A DNA stretch of 64,000 bases, taken from NCBI RefSeq assembly GCF_000143415.4, contig NW_003314383.1, positions 62,001-126,000 of the forward strand, written 5' to 3'. This DNA is from Selaginella moellendorffii. Lineage: Eukaryota; Plantae; Lycopodiophyta. The notes under the pieces are model-generated. The model was not told the origin of the DNA. It did not search any database and saw only the letters and a list, made by a program, of their open reading frames with translations. The translations under genes and the position numbers were made by a program. Numbering within the stretch: the stretch's first letter is position 1; each line of letters begins with the position of its first letter. Below, one piece after another: positions 3,958 through 62,154 of this stretch.

Positions 3958-6900
3958 GTGTGGGTCATTACTTCCATTGTGGAGAGTTAGAACATTGGTC
4001 CTTAAAATGTCCCAAGAAGCATAAGATAAGATGTTGTGCTAATGTCCTGAGGGAAGACAGTGGTGGTGAAGTTGAAGGGGTTGACGAGTTAGTTTATGTA
4101 GACTATGAGGAAGAGGAGGTGAGTTACTTTCGTTACTTTCCTTAAGTTTTTCTTATAGTCAATGTAAACACTAATCTATTGATGTATCTAGTAGGTTTTG
4201 TCCGTAGACACCGAATCCAAGTGATGATTGTCATAGGAGATACGCATAGCATGATATCCAAAGACTTATTTAAGCTGTTAGGATTGAAAGCTGAGCACAT
4301 ATCACCCATACACTTCCAGTTTGCAGAAGGTGGGAAAGTAGCCAGAAAATTTGTGAGTGATGTTCCAATAAAAATATCTAGAAAGAAAGAGTGGACTTGG
4401 TAGTGTTGAAGATACCAGATTTTCAGATGGTGTTTGGTATAGATTTCTTCAACAAATATATTAAAGGGATTTATGGTGCTCGAGAATGTCACATCATGTT
4501 AAGGTTAGAAGGATGTCCTAATGTGTCCTTCCAGTTGCAAAAGCGCTCCACAAAGGATTTGGGATGCTAAGTTTGACTACAAGAGCCATTCAAAAAGCAA
4601 CTAAGAAGGGATGTCAAACATTTTGGATTCAAGTGATGGAAGCTAAGGGTGTTAGTGACTTAGTTTGAACTGGTGATAAGGTTGATCCTGTACCAAAGAA
4701 GATATTGGAGTTGTTGGCATATCTTTCTAAAGGATTTGCCACTAAGGCTACCTCCTAGCCATGAGGTTGATCATCAGATTGAGGTTATTTCGGGTTCTAA
4801 ACCACTTACAAAAGCTCCATATCATTTGAACATGAAGGAGATGGTTGAACTCAAGAAGCAATTTGACAAAGATCATATCCGACCAAGCAAATCACCTTAT
4901 AGAGCGCTGGTCCTTTTTGTTATGAAAAAGGATAGAATCATGAGGATGTGTTTCAACTATCGGGCACTCAACAAGATCATGGTCAAAAACAATTATCCTT
5001 TGCCTCACATTAATGACTTGTTTGACCAACTTTTAAAGGCTAATTATTTTACACGACTTGATTTGTGGTCCGGGTATCATCAGATATGGGTGGTAGATCA
5101 AGATGTGGAGAAGACAGCCTTTAAGACTCAATATAAATCTTATGAGTTCCTTGTCATGCCATTTAGGTTATGCAATGCTCCAGTAATGGTCAACACAATG
5201 ATGGATAGAATATTTGGATATATTTATTGTCCTATATATCAATGATGTTCTAGTCTTTAGTGAAATGTTGGAGGATCATTTGAAATACTTGGAGTTGGTG
5301 TTTCAGAAGTTGTATGAACACAAACTATATGCTAAGGAAAATAAATGCGCTTTTGAACAATTGCACGTGAACTTTCTTGGACATATAATTGGTGGTGGCA
5401 TAATTGAGGTGGATCCAAAGAAGGTGGAAACGGTGAAGTCCTAGGAAGCCCCAACCATTGTATCAAATGTTAATTCCTTTCTTGGTTTGGCAGGATACTA
5501 TCACAAGTTTGTCTGCAATTTTGCAAGAATTGCTCTTCCGTTGACTGAGTTAATGAAAACTAGTATACTGTTTCATTGGATACCAGCTTTTCAGCGTGCT
5601 TTTGTATGGTTGAAGGAGATCTTGACTACCGTTCTTGTTCTTAGGATCCCAGATCTTGATAAACCCTTTGAAGTGCATTGTGATGCATCTGGCTATGCTA
5701 ATGGTGCAGTGTTGCAGCAAGATTGTGACAAAGCGGTTGGTGTTACACTAAGGCAATATGGTTGTTCCATTGCATTCTACTCCAAGAAATTGGATGAAAC
5801 CCAACGAGGATGGCCAATGCATGAGAAAGAGATGTTTACTATAGTGTTGGCGTTAGAACATTGGAGACACTATTTGCATGGACATACCAAGGTTTATATG
5901 AATAATAACACACTGAGCTACTTTGCTATGTAACCAAAGCTTATGCCAAAACAGGCTTATTGGCAAAAGAAGCTTGCTAGATTTGATATTGAAAACATCT
6001 ATAAAACTGGTAAAGACAATATTGTTCCAGATGCGTTGAGTTGTCAGGCTCAATTCTAGGTAGTATCGGCAATCAGTTCGGACTAGTTAGAGGACATTTG
6101 GGATTCATATAGAAGTGATTTATTGGCGAAGGCAATCGTGCACTGTGCAGAGTTGTTGAAGCAGAACCCTGGTAGTAAAGCAGCGAAAGTTGCTAGTCGT
6201 ACCAATGCGAAGCTTCACTTCTTAGTTCGGGATGGGCTTATAATCTATAAGCAAGAAAGATTGTACCTTCCCTCTAAGGATCTGCAATAGTTGTTTCTAT
6301 AGGAACATCATGATGTTTCAGTAGCAGGACATAGTGGAAAGAGAAAGACTCTTCCTTTATTGAAAAGGGGATTATTTTAGTCTAGTATGGAAGGTGATGT
6401 AGCAAACTATGTTTATTCCTGCCCTATATACCAGCAATGTAAGTGCAGAACTGAGAAACAAACTGGAAAGTTGCAATGCATTCTAACACAGGCATGGCCA
6501 TTTTAGAGTGTGATACTTGACTTCGTCACTTGCTTGCCGAAGTCTAAGGGTTATGATACTTTGATGGTGGTTGTGGATTAGTTGTCGAAGATTGCATATT
6601 TCATTCCAACTGTGGAAATAGTGAATGCAAAGTAAGCAACAAAGCTCTTTTTCCATGAAATAGTGCGGGTTTGTGGTCTTCCTAAAAAGATGATCTCGAA
6701 CAAAGATTCAAGATTTAGTGGGAAGTTTAGAGGCACACTATTCCAGTTGTTTGGTACTAAATTGAAGTTTAGTATGGCTTATCATCCTCAAACTAATGGG
6801 CAGACTGAACATGTGAATACTCATGTTGAGGATTATCTACGGTATTATGTCTCAACGGACCAACGCAACTAGGTTGAGCATTTAGACACAGTAAATATTT

Positions 6901-8104
6901 ATTATAACAACACATTTCACAACACTATTGGCTGTTCTCCATGGGAGATGTTGCAAGGGAATGCTCGAGGGGTGCCTCAATAGATTGTTGTACCAAAACC
7001 AATGTCTGAGGTGTTGGTCTTGGCCATTGAGACTTATGTGGAGCAGCTATGCTAAGGTTGATCTAGAGCTACTAAGGTGATGTGATAAGGATCAGCATTG
7101 TCAGGATGTATCCTATCAAGTGGGAGATTAGGTGTGGCTATCTTCCCGAAACTTGAATATTAAGGTATCTTTCTCTCGAAAGCTGTTACCTCGATATGTT
7201 GAACCCTATTGAGCGTTAAAATGAATTGGTGATATATCCTATTAGTTGGATATCCATAAGAGATGTCCAGACTTCATGATGTGTTTCATGTCAATTTACT
7301 GGCTCCATATCATGAGGATCCTGGCCACTCTAGGGATGTCTGTCCAGCTCTAGATGTTATTGATGGTGAATCAGAGTATCTAGTTGAGGCTATTCTTTTG
7401 TCTTATAAGGCATGTGGTGGTCAAACCAAAAAATATTTAGTTAAGTGGAAAGGTTACCCATCTTGTGAATCAATTTGGGAGCCTCTTAGGAATCTTACAC
7501 ATGCTCATGAGCTTGTCATAGAGTATGAGAATTGTAATAAAGACTAGCTCTTGTAAATCTTGTAATAAATCTTGAAAATCAATAAAGTAATATATTTCTA
7601 TAAATCAAAGTTTTATTTCCCTCATTCGTTAGTACTTAGGTCAATTTTGGTAGGCTGACTTTGGCACTTTGGTTCATGGGTTCAATCTATAACCATGGTG
7701 ATAACTATTATAGACTAATCACAAGTCCCTCTCGATAACTTATTTTTTAAAAGGGGCAACCAGTTTATAATAGTTGTCTAAATCTTCCCAAAGGGGTTGA
7801 TTTCTTGCTCAAGGGAAGTTGGGCCTCTGGCCTTCTCCTTATGTCCCTGCAGGTAAAGCCAAGTGGTACTCAAAGCAGCAAGGGTGGCTAACTCTATTAG
7901 TCATTTTCCTTGTCGGTAATGGTTGGAGGGTGTCTAAGTCTTCACATCTTTAAATGTAGAGGAGAGATAGTTCCATAACTCATTTAAGTCAGTGTGTTTC
8001 CCACATAATGTGCTTTCTGTTAACTTTCAAAGTTGTTTCCTTGACGGTTTGCTAGACACAGGTATGCATCAACGAGGACATTGATCTTCCCTAAAGGGGG
8101 AGAG
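3958..8104 (+). mobile_element. Decayed Ty3/gypsy chromovirus internal region (gag remnant, PR, RT, RNase H, integrase, chromodomain), pseudogenised
   Basis: Zn knuckle remnant FHCGELEHWSLKCP (3960). RT motifs RMCFNYRALNK, RLDLWSGYHQI, VMPFRLCNAP and YIND (degenerate YxDD). RNase H CDASGYA...EKEM. Integrase AYHPQTNGQTE and HDVFHV. Chromodomain YLVEAIL...YLVKWKGYPSCESIWEP (7263-7547). Many stops and frameshifts. Confidence 0.93.
8093..8104 (+). mobile_element. Polypurine tract
   Basis: aaagggggagag immediately before the TGTC LTR start at 8105. Confidence 0.8.
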
Positions 8105-12774: not shown

Positions 12775-12814
12775 CACACTTCAGGCGTCGCGCCCTTTTG
12801 GAGTTGAAAAAGTC

Positions 12815-12843: not shown

Positions 12844-15800
12844 ATGCAGGGCAGGGGTTTCGGATTCGTCATGGCTGGCGGTGCCGCTTGCGCCGCCGGC
12901 CTCCATGCCATCGACGATGTGCCGTTTGAAGGCGCCATCCGCAGCTCGGCGCACCAGCTTTGCACGCTGAATGAGGTGAGTGCTTCATCCACCCTGGGCA
13001 GGGAAGGGAGATACAGCGGCCATTTCACATCTTGTGTGGCTTGGCTCAGAGCTTGCAAGGCTTAGACTCGAAGCACAGCGACGGTATGACCAAGACGCTA
13101 TCGGAAGATGTGAGGCGCAAGTGCGGCAACCTTAGCTGGGCCGACCTCGCAACCAAGCTGTCCCTGCTCATGTGGGAGCAAGCTGGGGTTGCCGACGATG
13201 GCTACAACAAGCTGCAGTGGGATGAGATACGGAACAGGGCAAATTACGTGACGGGAAGGCTGAGGGAGATGCAGGACAACTTCCCGGGCGACCACAAGGT
13301 GTTTAGGAGCACCTTTTGTGCCCTCTTGAACGCCTACGCCATCATGCATAGCATGCTCTGGAACCCGGCTTGCTCACGGTACGTGTACCCTCTCTTATCC
13401 TCCCGACCTTCCTCTCACCCATCTTTGCTCGGTTTTCAATCCAAGCAGGTGTTGTGTAGCTGCAGAATGGTGGATCTGGGGAATGGTGTATTCACAGTCA
13501 AACAGGCACAACCTGGACAGAGTCCTCGCCCGCCTTCAGCTCCATGCGCTCTACCTCAGCTCCGACATTCTGCCAGACGCAGCCAAGCTCTTTGCTGCAA
13601 CCAAAATCGTGCAGCCGGATCTGCTCGACGCGCAAAACTGCCTCATATCTAGCGTCCCGACGGCGTTGGACACTGTTGTGGGGGACAAGAGGCTCTTTCT
13701 GTCCATTTCCCCTGCTCCTGTCTCAGCCTCAGAAAGCCTACTTGCAGCTACACCAACTAGTCCCTCGTCCATGAGAGAGACTTTGATGCCCGAAGGAGCA
13801 CCGCCATTGCAACCGTTCCTGCCATCCGCCAGCATTCCTTCGGCTGTCTCCTCGCTGCCATCCACTATCGCCGCTGTTCCCTCCTCCATCGTATCCAAGG
13901 CAGTGGAAGCAGCCTCAGCTGTAGCATCTGCAGCATCGTCGGTTTTGGCGTCGGAAGTAGCACGCAGTGTTGAGGAAACCGAGCCAGAGGTGCCACAACA
14001 GGTTCAAGAAAAAGTAGAAGCTTTGAAGGTTAAGTCGTCTCTAGTTCAGTCATCCGAGCCACAGGTTGGCATGGATAACTTGGCGGGAAGGGTCTCCTTG
14101 GGTTTTCAGAAGAAGGTGGCCGATTTGCAAGACAAGGCCGCTTCTCTGCTGCAAATCAAGGCATCGGAACTGCAAAACAAGGTACTCATTATGGGAATTG
14201 GAGTGAGACTGAATAAACTTGACAGGTGCCAGCGAGGTTACTAGAATTGCAAGGGAAGGCTGGTCAGGTAGGAGCCGTGGCCTCGGACCTCCAATCCCGC
14301 GTCACCGCAATTCCGTCGGTGTTGGATGCGAAAACAAGCGAGATGCAGGCCCGTGTCGGGTCGACTCTGTCCTCCCTTCCCTCGCAAGTCCGGGAAAGTA
14401 TTTCAGACGCACAGGCAAAGTCCTCTGCAGAAATGCAGGCGACTGCTTCGTCAGTACAGTCTGGGCTGCGAAATAAAGTTGCTACTCTCTCATCGGCGAT
14501 ACAGGCGAAGGTTGCAGCAGAAGACGTTCAAGCTAAGGTGGCATCGGGGTTCAGGTCATCTGACCTGGTTTCAGACTTACGTGAGCCTTCGACAGAAGTA
14601 AAGTCAAGTGTACAATCAAGAATTCAAGCTCTCGAGTCACGAGCCTCTGCTTCTGCTCCAAAGCACCACCTTCCTCCAAAACCTCCATCCGTTGCAGTGG
14701 ATGTTCCACCGGCCGTGGCAACCGTGGCATCTGCTGTTGCGTCGGCGGCATCCGCAGCGATGGCGGCAGCTAGCTCCGCAATTCAGGCACAGGAAGCAGC
14801 ACCAGCTCCGCAAGTAGTTCCTGTAGCCATTGTCAGTGCACCGGGAAAGATGGCCAAGCCTTCAATACGCATGCCGTCTCCTTCGGGGCCCATAACTACA
14901 GAGACGACAATGGGAGGCCAGAAGGTGTTTGTGACACTCCCTGAGACTCCCAAGTTGCTGCCAGCTCCGGTGGAACAGCAAGCAGCAAGGGGCGGTAGTA
15001 TGGTGAGCTTGGCCGCGGCGTCCACGTTAGCAGCGCTCCCGCCCTTGGAGCAAGGGATATTTGATCTTCCGGCGGTGCCACTGGCAGTGTTCCCTACGGC
15101 TGAGAAGAGCCACTGCCTAGCCATAGTTCCGTTTCAAGAGCAGAGGCACTGCGTGGCCTTGATACCGGCGTTGGGAGCGGCATCTGGCGACAGGCCATTG
15201 ATTGCAATTGTGCCACACGAAGACATGAAGCACTGCTTGGCGGTGCTGCCAGGCGCCCGTAGTGTTGGTCTTCCCGAGCACAAGAAGCGGTGCCTGGCTA
15301 TCATTCCGTACCAGGACAAGGACAGCTGCCTGGCGTTGATCCCCACGTCACAGGAGGTGGCCTCGGCTGGCGAGCAACAAGAGAGCTCCCTGGCTGTGGT
15401 GCCGTTTGAGGACAGGCTCGAGTGCCTGGCGGTGGTCCCGACTGCGCCATCGGAGGCGCTTGCCAGCATGAGCGCGAGCAAGAGCGCGCAGGACCTGGTG
15501 CAGTGCTTGGCCATGCTTCCGCCTCAAGAACACGAGCACGGCGGCGTGGTGCGCAAGTTGGCAGTGGTTCCATTGGACGACAAGATGAACTGTCTGGCAC
15601 TACTGAGGCCCGACGGCCCTCTGGACCTGCGGCAGCAGTGCATGGCTCTCATTCCCGCCATGCCGGAAGCCGTCCACGCGAGGCTAGAGCAGCACAGGCA
15701 TTCCTGCTTGGCCATATTCCCGGCGTCCACGCCGGGTGGTGGCCAAGGCCAGGCGCTGGCACTCATTCCCGTGGCAGGAGCAGGAGCAGAGGAGGCTCCT

Positions 15801-18800
15801 TGCCTGGCGATAGAGCCAACCACCCCGGAGGCGGCCATGGCGGACCAAAGGCACTGCATTGCCATCATCCCCACCAACCCGGACGTGTGCATGGCAGACG
15901 GTGGCTTCTCGATTGTCCCCACGACACCGAACGCAGCCCTCCGCGACGCCAGCCAGTGCTTCGCTATCATCCCCACCGCTCCCAACCTCGCCTTGTGCCA
16001 CCAGAAGACCGTGCTCGCCATTGTACCTGCTGCACCGTCCGCCACCCCAGCAGGCCCCAGCACCAGCGCAGGCACCCTCGAGGCTGACAAGCCTCTTGTC
16101 ACTGTCCTCCCCTCCCCTTCTTCATCGTCCTTCCCGTTCGCGGACAAGCACAAGTTCCTTCTCCCGCCCGACGAGCCTACGACCGCCCAACTTTACGAGG
16201 AGCTCCAGCCGGTTGCGCACCTTATCAAAGTGGGGCTGAGGGAGCGAGTGCGAGCTCTTGTGGATGAGCTTGAAAAGCATGATAAGCAGCGGCAGGTGGC
16301 GGGAGTGGCTATCCTAGGCGAGGGCGGGCTTGGAAAGAGTGCAATACTGAGAGAAGTCCTTACGGAACTCCGGAGGAAAGGCGAACACGCAGTGGCGTAT
16401 GGAGAGACGAGCGTGGCATCTTCACCGGAGGCCCTCACGGACACCATCTCTAGCCTTGTCCACCAGCTTGGAGGGGATTCGAGGGAAGTATATTACAGCA
16501 CGCTGGAAGCCAGGCAAGCTCTCGGCAAGCAGCTGGCGCAGCTTGGGGCCAAGCAAAAGGCGGTGTGCGTGGCGGTGGACAATGTTTGGTCTGGTGCAGC
16601 TCTGAGGGAAATGCTGCCCAGGAACCTGAGCCAGTTGCTATCTCCGGCAAGCTGTGTTATGGTTACTTGTCCCTCCGAGTCCGTGGCACGGGCGCTGGAC
16701 GAGCTGTGCAAACCAGCACATCCGAGTGCTACCGTCAACTACTGTTTTTGGTGCTATCAACCCAGCCATCTGTCACCTCCAGAGGCCAAAGAAATGTTTA
16801 TGCTGCACGCGTCCAAGCGCGGGGTGCATCTCTTACCGGAGCATGAAGAGCTGGTTGACGATCTTGTCCCGCTCTGTGGCGGCCTTCCGCTCGTGCTGCA
16901 GGTTGTGGGCTCACACTTTGCAAGGTTTGCCCGACGGAAGAGAGACGAGTGGCTGCACATAGCAAAGAAGCTGAAGCTGGCACAGGAGTTCCAAGTTCGC
17001 GACGACGAGATATGCTCCAAGCTCAAGGTGATTTACGACGGTCTCGACCCGTCCTTTCAGGAGGCCTTCCTGGACGTTGCAACGTTCTTCCGCGGCGCCA
17101 ACTGGAAGATGGTGGAGAGGAGTCTGGGCAAGCACCAGCTCGCAAGCTTGGCAGATCAAGCTTTCGTGTTTGCCAAGCAAAAAGAGCCGGATGCACAATG
17201 GTGCTCGCAGGATCTACTGGATTCGGTGCCTGTGTGCAGGCAATCCATGAGGTTGAATACAGAAGTCGTGGAGATGCATGATTTGGTTTACTCTCTGGGC
17301 CACCAGCTTGCCAAGGGAAGCTACGTGACTTCCAGCGACGCACAGAGGTTGCCGGATGTCCTGCACAATAAAGGGGTAAGTGATCTCCCTCCCTCTCCTT
17401 TGCTTTGCTGATCATTCTTGTTTGCAGGAGCTAAGCATGATCAAGGGGCTTACATTGAAGAGGTGTCAAGAGCCTTTCCCTGTGGGACTCATCGACAAGA
17501 TGAGGAAGCTTCATGTACTCGTCTTCGAAGGCACGAGTATGATCGGTCACTGCCACCGCCCCCCGCACCAGCTGCGCTACTTGGTTTGGCATCCCCTGGA
17601 CCAAGGGAAGGAGAGAGCATCAATGCCGTTCAAGCTCAAGAGACTCAGCAAGCTTGCCGTGGCACATTTGCACAACATACGGTCTGATTTCACCGACATT
17701 GACGTAAGCTGAGGCAACAAGGCTAGCCAGCTCTCTAAAAACTTCTTGTTTGGCTTGTCCCTTGTGCAGTTCCCTCCGAAACTGGTGGAGTTGGAGCTAG
17801 ACAACTGCGTGAAGCTTGTTGAACTCCCCCGCTCAATCGGGAGCTTGAAATGGCTGCACAGCCTGCACATGCACAACTGCCACAGCCTGAGAGCACTTCC
17901 GGACTCGATTGGGGGCCTGGTCATGCTGCAGGAGCTTGTGCTCAGCGTGTGTACCAGCATCACGGAGCTGCCGCAGTCCTTGGGGAACCTCCACGACCTC
18001 GAGTACGTGGACCTTGCGGCTTGTTTCAAGCTCATGGCCCTGCCCAGAAGCATTGGAAGGTTGATGGCGCTCAAGGTGATGGACTTGACAGGATGCGAGA
18101 GCCTGACGAGCTTGCCGCCGGAGATCGGTGAGCTGCGGAACCTGAGAGAGCTGGTCCTCGCGGGGTGTGGGTCGCTCAAGGAGCTCCCCCCTGAGATTGG
18201 GTCGCTCACACACTTGACCAACCTGGACGTGTCCCATTGTGAGCAGCTGATGCTTTTACCGCAGCAGATTGGAAACCTGACTGGCTTGAGAGAGCTCAAC
18301 ATGATGTGGTGCGAGAAGCTGGCGGCCCTTCCCCCTCAGGTTGGCTTCCTGCACGAGCTGACGGACCTGGAGCTGTCCGACTGCAAGAACCTGCCAGAGC
18401 TTCCCGTGACCATTGGGAAGCTGAGCTGTTTGAAACGGCTGCACCTGCGCGGATGTGCTCACCTCAAAGTGCTGCCACCCGAGATAGGTGGCCTCAAAAG
18501 CGTGAGCTCGATTGACTTTCGGGGGTGCGTGAGCCTGGCATCACTTCCGTCTGCGGAGATTGCAAAGATGAAACCGCTCACGTTCCTGGGTGCCGAGTGT
18601 GGGCCTGCCACCGAGTTGTGGCCAAACGTCCACCACCTCAGTGCGCTCAAGCGGCTTGACATTGACGACAAGTCTGGCTGCTGCGTCCTTGTTCCAGCGG
18701 AGATTTGGTCGCTTAGCACGTTGGAGAGGCTTGCGCTGCGGGGTTTCCGGGGAGTAGGCGGTTTTGCCCACGCAAAGTGGAACCTGCCCCTGCTCACGTC

Positions 18801-19941
18801 CCTGTGGATGGAAGGCTTCACCAACGTCACCGCTCTGCCATCAGAGCTGGCAACTCTAACATCGTTGACCTTCCTGGTGCTGGCTGAGTTCTCGAGCCTC
18901 ACCGAGCTGCCGCCGGGCATTGGCCACCTGAGCAAGCTGGAGAGGCTGAGCCTGAGATGTAGAAAGCTCAAGACACTGGCGCCAGACATGTTCAGGGGGC
19001 TAACAAAGCTGCGTTGCTTAAGCTTGGCCGAGTGCGTGAGCTTGACGACGCTGGCCGTACCCAGAGGGAGCCTGGCGTCCCTAGAGATTCTCGACTTGGT
19101 AGGGTGCAGCAGCCTGACGGAGCTCCCGGCGGCCGTTGCCGGCATGAGCTCGCTGGAGAGGCTCAACTGCAGGGAGTGCACCGCACTCAAGGCCCTTCCC
19201 CCTCAAGTTGGCGAGCCAACAAGGCTGCAGGCACTCTACCTCCAGCAGTGCTCAACGCTCAAGGAGCTTCCGCCACAGATTGGGAAGCTGTCCATGCTGG
19301 AGAGGCTCGACTTGAAAAAGTGTGGCGGCCTAACGAGCTTGCCCTCGGAGATTGGCATGCTGTCAAGGCTCAAGTTCTTACATCTCAATGCGTGCACGGG
19401 TATCAAGCAACTCCCGGCAGAGGTTGGAGACATGCGGAGCCTGGTGGAGCTGGGGTTGGAAGGATGTACGAGCCTCAAGGGGTTGCCAGCGCAGGTTGGT
19501 CAGCTGCGCAGCCTGGAAAACCTTGGTCTCGACGGCTGTACGGGCTTAACATCGCTGCCAGCGGATGTGGGGAATCTGGAATCCCTCAAGCGTTTGTCAC
19601 TGGCCAAGTGTTCGGCCCTCGAGGGGCTTCCGCGGGAGGTGGGCAGGCTGCCAAAGCTCAAGCTTTTGCGGCTGGACGGGTGCACCAGCATGAGTGAAGT
19701 GCCTGCGGAGCTTGGACACGTGCAGACGCTCGTCAACTTGGGTTTGGAGGGGTGCACCTCGCTGAGCTCCATACCGCCGGGGATTTTCAGGCTGCCAAAT
19801 CTGGAGCTCTTGGACCTGAGGAGGTGCACACTGCTGGCTCAAGACGTGGGCTCCTCGTCGGACATGCACAAGTATGGCTGCACCCTGGTGACCAACGACT
19901 TGGACTGGGAAGGGTTTGAGGAGGTTTGGCTTTACTACTGA
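12844..19941 (+). CDS. NB-ARC-LRR (NLR) protein, ~2263 aa, with a very long atypical N-terminus. Exons 12844-12975, 13050-13378, 13449-14181, 14226-17375, 17428-17703, 17770-19941
   Basis: P-loop GEGGLGKS, Walker B VAVDNVW, CGGLPL, RNBS-D FLDVATFF and MHD (EMHDLV), then nearly 30 24-aa LRRs (LxxLPxxIGxLxxLxxLxLxxC). All six exons join in frame through GT-AG introns. The first two exons are less certain. Confidence 0.88.
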
Positions 19942-20334
19942 GTGGGGGCGGCGGATTTTGTTGAGCGAGCGAGCGCAGAGCTTTGATTCGATTCCCCTTG
20001 GCAATGGCAGAGGGTGTGGATGGATAATAATACAAGTGCAGTCAGATTTGTTCACATGGACCTCACATGACCGATGATATAACAAAACATATATCCTATA
20101 TAACACACAGGAAAAGTAAAGAAGAAAAGGTAAAGTAGATAAGTAGCCACTGAGGAGGAGCAAGGGTTGTTCTTCTCTCAACTGGCAAGAATGGACAAAT
20201 CCTCGTGCCTCCCGGAGCGGGCAGCCCAGCTAGGTAGATAGGGTTTGGGTCTCGCAGGGCCTCACGCGCCTCAAAACGGGGTTAGATGTTGTAGGCAAGA
20301 GGGGCGAGCAAGGGGAAGATCTAGAGAGGCGAGC

Positions 20335-23300
20335 ATGTCGACCACCAAGCTGACTTACTCTTCGGGCAGCTCCGCCAAGTCCAAGCACAGCGTCCGTGTG
20401 GCACAGACGACCGCGGATGCCAAGCTCCATGCCGTGTACGAGGAGTCTGGTGAGTCCGGGGACTCGTTCGACTACACCAAGTCGGTGAATGCAACCAAGT
20501 CCACGGGCGAGAGCATCCCGGCGCAGGCCGTCACGGCCTACTTGCAGCGGATGCAGCGCGGTGGCCTGGTGCAGCCCTTCGGCTGTATGCTGGCGGTGGA
20601 GGAGGGCAGCTTCCGCGTGATTGCTTTCAGCGACAATGCAGGGGAGATGCTGGACCTCATGCCCCAGTCGGTCCCCAGCCTCGGCGCCGGGCAGCAGGAT
20701 CTGCTGGGGATCGGCAGCGACGCGCGCAGCCTCTTCACGCCGGCCAGCGCCAGCGCCCTGGAGAAGGCGGCGGGCGCCATCGACGTGAGCATGCTCAACC
20801 CCATCTCCGTCCACTGCAAGACGTCGGCCAAGCCCTTCTACGCCATCGTCCATCGCATCGACGTGGGCCTGGTGCTGGACCTGGAGCCCGTCAAGGCCAG
20901 CGACACGAGCGTGGGATCCGCTGCCGGTGCCCTCCAGTCCCACAAGCTGGCGGCCAAGGCCATATCGCGCCTCCAGTCGCTGCCCGGCGGCGACATCGGG
21001 CTGCTGTGCGACACGGTGGTGGAGGAGGTGCGCGAGCTGACGGGCTACGACCGCGTCATGGCCTACAAGTTCCACGACGACGAGCACGGCGAGGTGGTGG
21101 CGGAGATCCGGCGCTCCGACCTGGAGCCTTACCTGGGCCTGCACTACCCGGCAACCGACATTCCCCAGGCCTCCCGCTTCCTCTTCATGAAGAACCGGGT
21201 ACGCATGATCTGCGACTGCTCCGCGGCGCCCGTCAAGATCAGCCAGGACAAGGATCTGCGGCAGCCCATCAGCTTGGCCGGCTCCACGCTGCGGGCACCC
21301 CACGGTTGCCACGCGCAGTACATGGGCAACATGGGCTCCGTCGCCTCGCTGGTGATGGCGGTGATCATCAACGACAACGACGACGAGTACCGCTCGTCGT
21401 CGGGCGGGGGTGGCGGCGGCGGCGCGTACCAGCAGAAGGGCAGGAAGCTGTGGGGGATGGTGGTGTGCCACCACACGTCGCCTCGCTCGGTGCCTTTCCC
21501 ACTGCGCTCCGCCTGCGAGTTCCTCATGCAAGTGTTTGGGCTCCAGCTCAACATGGAGGTGGAGCTGGCAGCGCAGCTGCGGGAGAAGCACATCCTGCGC
21601 ACCCAGACACTCCTGTGTGACATGCTGCTCCGCGACGCCCCCATCGGCATTGTGTCGCAGTCACCAAACATCATGGACCTGGTCAAGTGCAATGGTGCTG
21701 CCCTCTACTACGGCAAGCGCTTCTGGCTCTTGGGCGTCACGCCCAGCGAGGCGCAAATCAAGGACATTGCCGACTGGCTGCTGGAGCACCACAAGGACTC
21801 CACCGGCCTCAGCACCGACAGCCTGGCCGACGCCGGCTACCCGGGTGCCGCGTCACTGGGCGACGAGGTGTGCGGCATGGCCGCGGCCAAGATCACCGCC
21901 AAGGACTTTTTGTTTTGGTTCCGCTCCCACACCGCCAAGGAGATCAAGTGGGGTGGCGCCAAGCACGACCCCGACGACAAGGACGACGGGCGCAAGATGC
22001 ACCCCCGCTCCTCGTTCAAGGCCTTCCTCGAGGTGGTGAAGCGGAGGAGCCTGCCATGGGAGGACGTGGAGATGGACGCCATACACTCGCTGCAGCTCAT
22101 CCTCCGCGGCTCCTTCCACGACATTGACGACAGCGACACCAAGACCATGATCCACGCGCGCCTCAACGACCTCAAGCTCCAGGGCATGGACGAGCTGAGC
22201 ACTGTCGCCAACGAGATGGTACGCCTCATCGAGACCGCCACCGCGCCCATCCTTGCTGTCGACTCGAGCGGCTTTATCAACGGCTGGAACGCAAAGGTGG
22301 CGGAGCTCACCGGGCTGCCCGTGACCGAGGCCATGGGGAGGTCCCTCGCCAAGGACCTGGTGCTGCAAGAGTCTGCGGACATGGTGGAGAGGCTGCTCTA
22401 TCTGGCGCTTCAAGGTACGCCATGACACACTTTCACGTACCTCACGCTAGCTAACCAGTTTCGTGTGGTGTGAAACAACAAACCAGGCGACGAGGAGCAG
22501 AATGTGGAGCTCAAGCTCAAGACGTTCGGCGTTCAAAAGGACAAGGAGGCGGTCATTCTGGTCGTCAACGCGTGCGCCAGCAGGGACGTTTCGGACAATG
22601 TGGTGGGAGTGTGCTTCGTTGGCCAGGACGTGACGGGGCAGAAGGTGGTAATGGACAAGTTCACGCGCATCCAAGGCGACTACAAGGCCATCGTGCAGAA
22701 CCCCAACCCGCTGATACCGCCAATCTTTGGCGCTGACGAGTTTGGCTACTGCTCCGAGTGGAATCCTGCCATGGAAAAGCTGTCTGGGTGGAAGCGGGAA
22801 GAAGTCCTGGGAAAGATGCTTGTCGGAGAGATATTTGGCATCCAGATGATGTACTGCCGCCTCAAAGGCCAGGACGCCGTCACCAAATTTATGATCGTTC
22901 TCAACAGTGCAGCAGATGGCCAGGACACGGAGAAGTTCCCCTTCGCCTTCTTTGATCGACAGGGCAAGTACGTCGAGGCTCTCCTCACGGCCACCAAGCG
23001 GGCGGATGCCGAGGGTTCCATCACTGGAGTGTTTTGCTTCCTACATATTGCTAGTGCCGAGTTGCAACAGGCCTTGACAGTCCAAAGAGCCACCGAGAAG
23101 GTTGCCTTGTCCAAGCTCAAAGAACTGGCTTACATCCGCCAGGAGATAAAGAATCCGCTCTATGGCATCATGTTCACTCGGACTCTCATGGAAACCACCG
23201 ACCTGTCCGAGGATCAGAAGCAGTACGTAGAGACTGGTGCTGTGTGCGAGAAGCAAATAAGGAAGATCCTGGACGATATGGACCTGGAAAGCATTGAGGA

Positions 23301-60045: not shown

Positions 60046-62154
60046 TCAGCTTTCTGACTTCAACTTGCGAGCACGTTTCTGCTGAGGTGGAGATGGAGGC
60101 GTGTCTGAAAATCTTGCTGGAGCCTGTACCACAGAAAGATACCAGAATTGGCATTCGAATGTAGCGTACGCAACATTTACCTTGCGCTTGTGATCGCGCT
60201 TGCCTATTCGTTCTCCTGAAACATGTTAACCATTACATAAATCAAAAACCAACACAATGGCCACTCACCTGATACAGCAGCAGCACGGTCACCTCCTCGA
60301 AATCCCCTCTGTAACCAGGAAAAATTCACCATATTAACCAACATTAAGAAAAATAAAGAACACCTTCGGGGTATTAGGCGTTGAAACTTCTGGGTGTGTT
60401 TCCCGCATGAATGAAACAGTCGCCTCGTTCCATTGAACCTACAACTCAGCGTCGTTAGAAGATTAAAGAAAAAAGGAGACAATTATATATGAAGCACGCA
60501 CCGCCTTTTGAAGGTTTACTAGATTGAGAACTTCCCTTCTCAATTCCAAATGCTCACGACATATCGATTCGGTAGGAATTTTCGGCTCCAAACGAACCTA
60601 CAAGCATGAAAGTCAAAAGGAATGAAATGCCTGTCCCATTGGATTACCCCAAGTTCATCAAGTAGTATTTGCTCGATACGCTTCACTATCCGTGCTCCAA
60701 CTGACGAAAGCATACTTTGTACCATTTGCCCCAAATTAGGACCTCGAAGAAACACGCGATGCTGCTAGCGAAGTCAAGGTGAGTAGACAAAAAAAGCACA
60801 ATTTAGACAAAAATTACGGACCCCACGAGTAGTAGTAGTGGTAGACGTCGCTGCTGCTGCAGTATCAGTAGAAGGCTGCGTAAGATCTGTTCCAGGGGCA
60901 GAAGGTTGTTCTGCCTGCTCGTCCACCTGTTATGGTTATAGTTCCGGTGTTTAATGCTGAAAGAAAAATGAAATGTAAAAATACGTACTTTACTCAGACG
61001 GGCTTCGGTAATACGCTTAGCCTCCGCGAGTACCTATGCAAGAACACCAGTTAAAAGGAGTAAGAAATGAAGAACACGCATACTTCCGCGTCCTCCCGCT
61101 CCTGTTGCCTCGACTGAGACAATAGCAAGCCAAGGGCGCGCTTGCGTTCCGTTTCATAATTGAAGTTGTATGCGTCCTGAAAGGGCATCCCGAATTCAGC
61201 GTTAGCTCAAGATTTCATGCAGATTTATACCTTCACATGCGGATGGTCAGCCACCTCTTCAGGAGTTGTGGCCCTGGATAATATTATTGCTTTGGACGCT
61301 TCATATCAAAGGAGAAGTGTTAGGAAGTACTGAGAAACACATACGGAGACAAGGGCAACCTGAGTAGTAGCGATCCTTGAGTTCCTCAACAGTACGTGGA
61401 GGAGAGAACCTGTCCGCTATTATAACGAATCGAAGGTCGAATTGCTCGCACATGCTGAACAGAAGGTCTGTTTCTTGTTTCGTCCATTTCTACAAAATAG
61501 AAAAAGAAAAAGAAGAAAAATGTTAAGCACACAAAATGGTCTTAGCACATACCGTATCTGCTAGGTGCTTGTTGTACTCGTCATCTGTATACTTCAAGAC
61601 TGCCACAGACTGTTTGAAGTTTGATTCTCTTAGACGAAACACAAGAAGGCCAAAGAAATTAAAGGCACTCACTCTATTGTACTTCGCGAAAGCGTAATCC
61701 CCGGTCGGCACCACCGAGTCCACGACTCGCACCTAGAAAATAAAAATAAAAAACATGTTTCGAATGCTAAAGTCTTGAATGTACGTGGTCACAGACCCAA
61801 TGTGATAGCTGCAACCCATCCGTGCGTGCCGAATTCGCAAAAGGAAGCCATTGCCACGAAATCTATCGAAAAACAAAATTTTCCAGATGCTATTTTGCAA
61901 GGAAGCTTACCTTTTGAGACGAAGCTTGACGTTGCTTGGTATCCACAGAGGCTATCAGAGGCGGCAGACCTCCAGTGAGAGCATATACCTACATGAATGC
62001 CCGTAATTCAATCCGGAGCTAGAATAGAGCTACTCTTTCTTACCTCCCGGGAGACACGATCGAGCTTCTTGGGCACCGTCTCCTTGGGCGCCCGGACGCG
62101 CTTGTCGCCCACAGGCCCTCCCTTGGGCAGCCCAAGGATGTCCTTGGCGTCCAT
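60046..62154 (-). CDS. SWC4: SWR1/NuA4 complex subunit SWC4 (DMAP1), multi-exon
   Basis: [50 protein letters not shown]-like [12 protein letters not shown]...[10 protein letters not shown] and the C-terminus [10 protein letters not shown]. Confidence 0.93.

Follow-up and report, generated by a model that had tools for sequence, protein, structure and literature searches.

What is the very long N-terminal part of an NLR (nucleotide-binding, leucine-rich repeat) immune receptor of the lycophyte Selaginella moellendorffii, and does it belong to the receptor at all? We addressed this question in a window of 64,000 nucleotides (positions 62,001 to 126,000 of the forward strand of contig NW_003314383.1, assembly GCF_000143415.4; DNA coordinates below are those of this window), in which a six-exon NB-ARC-leucine-rich repeat (LRR) gene occupies positions 12844-19941 of the forward strand, its 5' part at 12844-14675 coding for residues 1-545. 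The product is listed in the S. moellendorffii RefSeq set as XP_024521209.1 ("uncharacterized protein LOC112342872", 2260 aa) and maps back onto the window exons at 100% identity in tblastn; a literature search turned up no paper naming XP_024521209.1 or LOC112342872. Selaginella reportedly has very few NLRs (about two in a survey, as cited in PMC3782705), and therefore each of them weighs heavily in reconstructing the intracellular immunity of vascular plants. As RefSeq already contains the gene, under the label of an uncharacterised protein, what is added here is a delimited orphan extension: as judged by the searches described below, a lineage-specific extension of ~1060 residues with no detectable relatives precedes a core that resembles the TIR-NLR (TNL) lineage. 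We regard this architecture, together with the orphan status of the extension, as very likely.

Gene structure of the extended receptor

The features that encode the extension as far as the end of its repeat region are as follows.

12844-12975, + strand: exon 1 of the alternative model; 44 codons, donor AG/GTGAGT, codon bias +0.16 in frame, G+C at third codon positions (GC3) 0.75
13050-13378, + strand: exon 2, residues 42-151, which form the first half of the head predicted as helical; phase-2 donor CG/GTACGT, 100% identity in tblastn
13449-14181, + strand: exon 3, 244 aa; second half of the head, linker and first repeats
13449-13716, + strand: first part of exon 3, head residues 151-240; codon bias +0.19 in frame, contains CSRCCVAAEWWIWG
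13717-14001, + strand: Ser/Ala/Pro-rich linker within exon 3, residues 241-335
14002-14181, + strand: hendecad repeats, part 1, at the end of exon 3, residues 336-395; motifs VQEKV, LQDKA and LQIKA
14182-14225, + strand: intron 3, 44 nt, GT..AG
14226-14675, + strand: hendecad repeats, part 2, at the start of exon 4, residues 396-545; the Q-x-[KR] motif occurs six times
14226-17375, + strand: exon 4; second part of the repeats, Ala/Pro-rich stretch, CLAIVP-type array and NB-ARC

Residue numbers and all whole-region analyses refer to the database protein XP_024521209.1, whose junction between exons 1 and 2 differs from that of the alternative model; the exons were searched singly, and the 44-residue exon 1 of the alternative model was analysed on its own only. 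The ATG of exon 1 follows an in-frame stop at 12805 with no other start in between, and the reading frame is kept only if each of the introns 1-3 (74, 70 and 44 nt) is removed, the nearest upstream in-frame stops being located at 12972 for exon 2, at 13327 for exon 3 and at 14220 for exon 4. Retention of intron 3 would shift the frame and lead to a stop at 14242. Codon bias favours the stated frame in exon 1, in the head-coding part of exon 3 and in exon 2, where it amounts to +0.34 in frame vs. -0.6 and -0.5 in the other frames (GC3 0.79).

The exon 2/exon 3 and exon 3/exon 4 junctions are identical in XP_024521209.1 and the alternative model, and the two differ only at the exon 1/exon 2 junction, where XP_024521209.1 joins 12918 to 13002 (donor GTGCCG) and the alternative model joins 12975 to 13050 (donor GTGAGT). 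Both versions are in frame, and they differ in the head by 16 (RefSeq) vs. 19 (alternative) residues. The stretch found in the alternative model only (12919-12975) carries a frame-specific codon bias of +0.28 with a GC3 of 0.79, and the stretch found in RefSeq only (13002-13049) has a codon bias of -0.04. Because both the donor consensus and the codon bias favour 12975/13050, this junction is better supported than that of RefSeq.

A single exon encodes the linker together with the second half of the head and the first repeats, and both a repeat motif and the repeat register cross from exon 3 into exon 4; therefore, these pieces constitute one gene. Specifically, a ninth copy of the repeat motif [LMVIA]-Q-x-[KR]-[VIAL], LQNK/V, arises only through splicing of exon 3 to exon 4, and the 11-residue register of ELQNKVPARLL and ELQGKAGQVGA is kept over the junction. 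A splice-offset test of the hendecad phase agrees with this junction, though weakly: offset 0 is only one of the three top-ranking offsets out of 11. At 4673-7547, upstream of the NLR gene, only degenerate Ty3/gypsy polyprotein open reading frames (reverse transcriptase, RNase H-like, chromodomain) were found in AT-rich DNA, and downstream a phytochrome gene (PAS_2-GAF-PHY-PAS) starts on the same strand a few hundred bases past the NLR stop (19941-20340); therefore, this strand offers no neighbouring gene of which exons 1-3 could be a part. No paralogous copy of the gene was found within the 64-kb window by tblastn.

The original prediction, made from the sequence alone, held that exons 1-3 join in frame and that the head and the repeats sit on the same NLR, and it would have failed had exons 1-3 belonged to a separate gene. 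All the peptides it quoted are present, the exons do join in frame with the last two junctions exactly as in XP_024521209.1, exon 3 and the motif and register shared across its 3' junction tie the head to the repeats, and what lies upstream is only the degenerate retroelement and not another gene. Cumulatively, reading frame, splicing and codon usage indicate that the head and the hendecad repeats are genuine parts of the annotated NLR gene.

The orphan extension and the receptor core

The head (residues ~1-240) is balanced in composition; of its 240 residues, 7 are Trp and 8 are Cys. It opens with the Gly/Ala-rich hydrophobic segment GFGFVMAGGAACAAGLHAI (residues 5-23, encoded at 12856-12912; KD19 1.48), and a Trp/Cys cluster, LWNPACSRCCVAAEWWIWG, straddles the exon 2/exon 3 junction. 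A single-sequence AlphaFold model predicts the head to be all helix, with ten helices, at a pLDDT of 38.7; because of this low value, and because there are no homologues for an alignment, a comparison of the head fold with that of coiled-coil (CC), RPW8, HeLo or MLKL domains is not possible. An internal duplication of the head was considered as well and rejected (Smith-Waterman z -1.7). The linker that follows at residues 241-335 (95 residues: S+T 26, A 17, P 13, aromatic 1) has no family match and is probably disordered. The Trp/Cys-rich helical region and subsequent Ser/Ala/Pro linker that had been read from the sequence are thus borne out in composition and order.

No Pfam family was returned for head residues 1-250 at E-values up to 10, including Rx_N (PF18052), RPW8, HeLo, HeLo-like and MLKL, and neither Pfam nor NCBIfam matched residues 1-250 or 540-1060 at this threshold; exons 1-3 taken singly had no Pfam match either. 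Against a 14-sequence CC profile built from NLR matches, hhalign gave a probability of 0.03% for residues 1-250 and of 0.08% for the stretch ahead of the NB-ARC (residues 900-1075). No EDVID-like motif is present in the head, and Pfam detects no TIR domain in residues 1-1060. For residues 230-560, which include the repeats, the best family was Apolipoprotein (PF01442) at 19.2-20.2 bits, below its gathering score of 90; ATP_synt_b of NCBIfam reached an E-value of 0.05, and none of the LEA_4, perilipin and synuclein models was listed at E-values up to 10. By the tests run, the protein is therefore outside the CC, TIR, RPW8, HeLo, MLKL, apolipoprotein, LEA and perilipin families.

Searches for individual relatives gave the same picture. 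When exon 3 (244 aa) was compared exhaustively with 1.84 billion representative proteins by phmmer, XP_024521209.1 alone was retrieved, and this protein is the only member of its own sequence cluster. A word search with residues 1-250 found no match among proteins of 138-437 aa, and one with exon 4 found none among proteins of 583-1857 aa, the latter because XP_024521209.1 itself, with 2260 aa, falls outside that range. Among PDB sequences the only match was chloroplast ATP synthase b' (E 0.86), an Atlas feature search with residues 1-250 gave a best score of 0.78 with recognition below threshold, and the N-terminus is shared by none of the 70 nearest NLRs. The exhaustive search covers exon 3 only, residues 1-151 being covered by the family scans, Atlas and the word search, and plant transcriptomes are thinly represented in the collections searched. 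The N-terminal domain had been proposed to lack a known family, and it indeed has no family, solved structure or database relative within these collections.

The remainder of the gene encodes the rest of the extension and the receptor core.

14676-17375, + strand: remainder of exon 4; Ala/Pro-rich stretch, CLAIVP-type motif array at ~15081-16028, NB-ARC at ~16245-17039
17428-17703, + strand: exon 5, start of the LRRs; placed by peptide mapping of XP_024521209.1, sites GTAAGT / CAG
17770-19941, + strand: exon 6, LRR domain and stop codon; placed by peptide mapping of XP_024521209.1, LRR_14 at E 2e-70 and RPS4B-like LRR_13

The NB-ARC domain (PF00931, 45.1 bits vs. a cut-off of 23.5), encoded late in exon 4, starts at about residue 1063, in agreement with the N-terminus of ~1050 aa originally estimated. 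A plant NLR is recognised by an NB-ARC above its gathering score followed by LRRs, and both are found here, the latter with the LRR_14 match given above. In the alignment, the P-loop (GLGKS), GGLPL and MHD motifs of the NB-ARC are intact, and the RNBS-D motif, FLDVATFF, is of the TNL type. Residues 1000-2260 find their best relatives in angiosperm TIR-NLRs, a kinase-NLR of the moss Ceratodon and an NLR of the liverwort Calypogeia with a weak hydrolase match; the best PDB match of the receptor core is the TNL Roq1. The closest NB-ARC is that of an 820-aa NB-ARC-LRR protein of the fern Adiantum capillus-veneris, at 102 bits vs. at most 45 for all others. This Adiantum protein shares the motifs VTC, LVPLCGGLPL and QEAFLD, and its N-terminus, of 138 residues, bears no relation to the extension of the Selaginella receptor. 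Judged from pairwise scores and motif inspection, on which the placement rests, the NB-ARC-LRR part is TNL-lineage-like and comes from a lineage with repeated exchange of heads, such as has been described for these receptors (PMC11218826).

Hendecad repeats and their possible role

The repeat region comprises 210 residues (336-545), or ~19 hendecads. Hydrophobicity is periodic at 11 residues (z 4.0) and at 22 residues (z 2.9), and the spectrum has a peak at 98 degrees, as for an 11/3 helix, with a z of 5.6 over the whole region and of 6.9 at residues 419-484, where the signal is strongest. The hydrophobic residues occupy columns 2, 5 and 9 of the 11, that is, a 3-4-4 spacing, and the 3-11 moment over the whole region is 0.156 vs. 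0.052 in shuffled sequences (p ~0.0005). The motif [LMVIA]-Q-x-[KR]-[VIAL] occurs in 8 copies, apart from the one created by splicing, where 0.29 would be expected. Strict 11-mers at the sequence level were considered and rejected, as Tandem Repeats Finder sees no DNA repeat and the spacing of the motif is irregular (8-18 residues); therefore, the periodicity is one of hydrophobicity and helix chemistry and not of copied sequence. AlphaFold models residues 359-501 as two helices of 86 and 54 residues (pLDDT 75-84), for which Foldseek returns only unspecific long-helix proteins (Vipp1/PspA, a chemoreceptor, an Smc coiled coil) at E-values of 0.46 or above and TM scores of ~0.2-0.4.

In composition, the region has fractions of 0.39 hydrophobic, 0.01 aromatic and 0.22 charged residues; its mean moment is 0.25-0.32 and its net charge +5, and its seven prolines fall into hendecad columns 9, 7, 2, 2, 5, 7 and 1. 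The 11-residue units had been placed at ~14100-14640 and described as apolipoprotein/LEA-like. Their periodicity is real, with limits that need to be widened to ~14002 and ~14675, and they do have the periodicity, composition and moment of helices that lie on lipid surfaces; family membership did not hold, with about 20 bits against the required 90 for Apolipoprotein and no LEA match. Separately, a hydrophobicity signal with a period of ~2.2 residues (164 degrees, z up to 10) was observed at ~14380-14820 (residues 463-594), where it covers the last hendecads as well as the Ala/Pro-rich stretch behind them; its source is an alternation of Ala, Ser and Val such as AVATVASAVASAASAAMAA.

As a tentative possibility, we propose a joint mechanism in which the hendecads act on a lipid surface and the head serves as an output module. 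The hendecads would form a 3-11 amphipathic helix, long and weakly hydrophobic, and attach reversibly to a membrane or a lipid droplet, and this contact would localise the receptor at that surface, by the physical principle that operates in perilipins, alpha-synuclein and exchangeable apolipoproteins and without common ancestry with them. The head, which occupies the position of the TIR, kinase or hydrolase heads of related NLRs, would be the output module: upon sensing of a ligand by the LRRs, the NB-ARC domains would oligomerise and bring the heads together.

Several observations weigh against this proposal. Between the head and the NB-ARC lie ~800 residues of repeats and low-complexity sequence, and this distance weakens the case for output by induced proximity. 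Walker B reads VDN, with Asn at the second acidic position, and in the TTR/TCR motif Pro stands in place of the sensor-1 Arg (VTCP; both at ~16760-16860, residues ~1180-1215); the NB-ARC switch may therefore be atypical, and ATP hydrolysis may be impaired. When the low-confidence head model was submitted to Foldseek, the matches (14-3-3, with a TM score of ~0.18 and an E-value above 0.7) were not interpretable. Conservation or selection cannot be measured on an extension without relatives. Finally, hydrophobic residues take up 3 of the 11 hendecad columns, which gives a narrow face of small residues such as right-handed coiled coils have, and apart from Apolipoprotein the weak sequence matches are to ATP synthase b-type stalks only.

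These last two points lead directly to another explanation, by which the hendecads would be not a lipid binder but a right-handed coiled-coil stalk, which would either maintain the receptor in a pre-formed dimeric state or keep head and core rigidly apart. By computation, such a coiled coil fits the hendecads equally well: the 3-4-4 (a/d/h) columns take up 3 of 11 positions and hold mainly Val, Leu and Ala, hendecads with hydrophobic residues at a, d, e and h form right-handed coiled coils, including that of ATP synthase b (PMC6131620), the modelled helices are 54 and 86 residues long, and the weak matches to chloroplast ATP synthase b' and to ATP_synt_b point the same way. However, seven prolines break the 210 residues, conservation of the repeat positions is poor, Ser, Gln and Ala abound on the polar face, which has few salt-bridge pairs, and every one of the sequence matches is far below significance. 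We consider the stalk possible but doubtful, and rank the lipid-surface helix slightly above it on account of three features: the prolines, a polar face rich in Ser and Gln, and the degeneracy of the repeats.

The extension could also be an integrated bait, that is, a sensor resembling a host component targeted by pathogen effectors, in which case the NB-ARC-LRR core, or a partner, would do the signalling. Integrated domains normally have a stand-alone parent in the host; what counts against this idea is that no other protein, whether of Selaginella or not, matches exon 3 among the 1.84 billion representatives or residues 1-250 in the word search. In its favour, a long distance separates the head from the NB-ARC, three or four unrelated segments make the extension modular, and integrated domains are frequent at either end of the NLRs of non-flowering plants (PMC11218826). 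On balance, we judge a bait to be unlikely. We would give no more credence to an extension of little or no function, either as a young or decaying coding stretch or as an over-extension by RefSeq of a gene whose main transcript starts downstream. The extension has no relatives and hence no demonstrated conservation, codon bias is weak in the linker and in early exon 4 (-0.2 to -0.09), the exon 1/exon 2 junction is ambiguous between RefSeq and the alternative model, and two catalytic positions of the NB-ARC are atypical, all of which would agree with such an origin. Yet the frames are open for 44 + 109 + 244 + 1050 codons and are connected by three canonical short introns, each of which is required to maintain the frame; codon bias is frame-specific, with a GC3 of 0.66-0.79, in exons 1-2 and where exon 3 encodes the head, and the hendecad register is coherent across 210 residues at the significance given above, which is not expected of random or decaying sequence.

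A bolder version of the lipid-surface proposal would make the head a new class of NLR output domain, in which the Gly/Ala-rich first helix and the Trp/Cys cluster insert into the membrane, or are acylated onto it, upon oligomerisation of a receptor pre-docked by the hendecad helix; this would be a lycophyte-specific counterpart of CC, RPW8 and HeLo domains, and we hold it to be rather improbable. In any event, the receptor takes the head replacement seen in the TNL-related lineage further in lycophytes, with a head and repeats that have no known relatives. To our knowledge, no perilipin- or synuclein-like helix has been described inside an NLR; if the hendecads bind lipid, they would be the first such targeting helix in this receptor class known to us and would provide a handle on its site of action. 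If the head signals, it would represent an additional output domain, and if neither holds true, what has been documented is an immune receptor with a large orphan extension.

Comparison with known systems

Four groups of proteins invite comparison with the Selaginella receptor. With the CC (ZAR1-type), RPW8, plant MLKL and HeLo domains, the head shares an N-terminal position on a STAND/NLR protein, a predicted all-helical structure and a hydrophobic first segment; its Gly/Ala-rich beginning is presumably similar to HeLo N-termini, a likeness that we take as a lead only. In contrast to these domains, the head has no family match, exceeds a four-helix bundle with its ~240 residues and is located far from the NB-ARC. 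With the hendecads of ATPase stalks (subunits b, E and G), the repeats share small hydrophobic residues at a/d/h, long modelled helices and the marginal matches to ATP synthase b/b', but these matches are not significant and the Selaginella region contains prolines.

TNL-related NLRs resemble the Selaginella protein in the P-loop, GLPL and MHD motifs, in the TNL-type RNBS-D and in a long LRR region of the RPS4B/LRR_14 type. Whereas the heads of these relatives are TIR, kinase, a weak hydrolase or none, the Selaginella head is not a TIR, kinase, hydrolase, CC, RPW8 or Cbl-N domain; ~800 residues separate it from the NB-ARC, and the whole extension of ~1060 residues is without a relative.

The 11-mers of lipid-surface proteins (perilipins 1-4, alpha-synuclein and apolipoproteins A-I, A-IV and E) show no homology to the Selaginella repeats, which are degenerate and present a narrower hydrophobic face; further, prolines occur at fixed repeat positions in the apolipoproteins, whereas those of Selaginella are scattered over the hendecad columns. 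Common to both are the 11/3 periodicity, the small number of aromatic residues and the presence of prolines. In Table 1 of PMC5889406, Plin3 has a hydrophobic fraction of 0.37, an aromatic fraction of 0.01, a charged fraction of 0.23 and a mean moment of 0.35, the corresponding values being 0.47, 0.02, 0.24 and 0.30 for alpha-synuclein and 0.35, 0.002, 0.15 and 0.257 for Plin4, and apoA-I is represented by 186 residues with 7 Pro. The charged fraction and the moment of the Selaginella hendecads fall within the range of this table.

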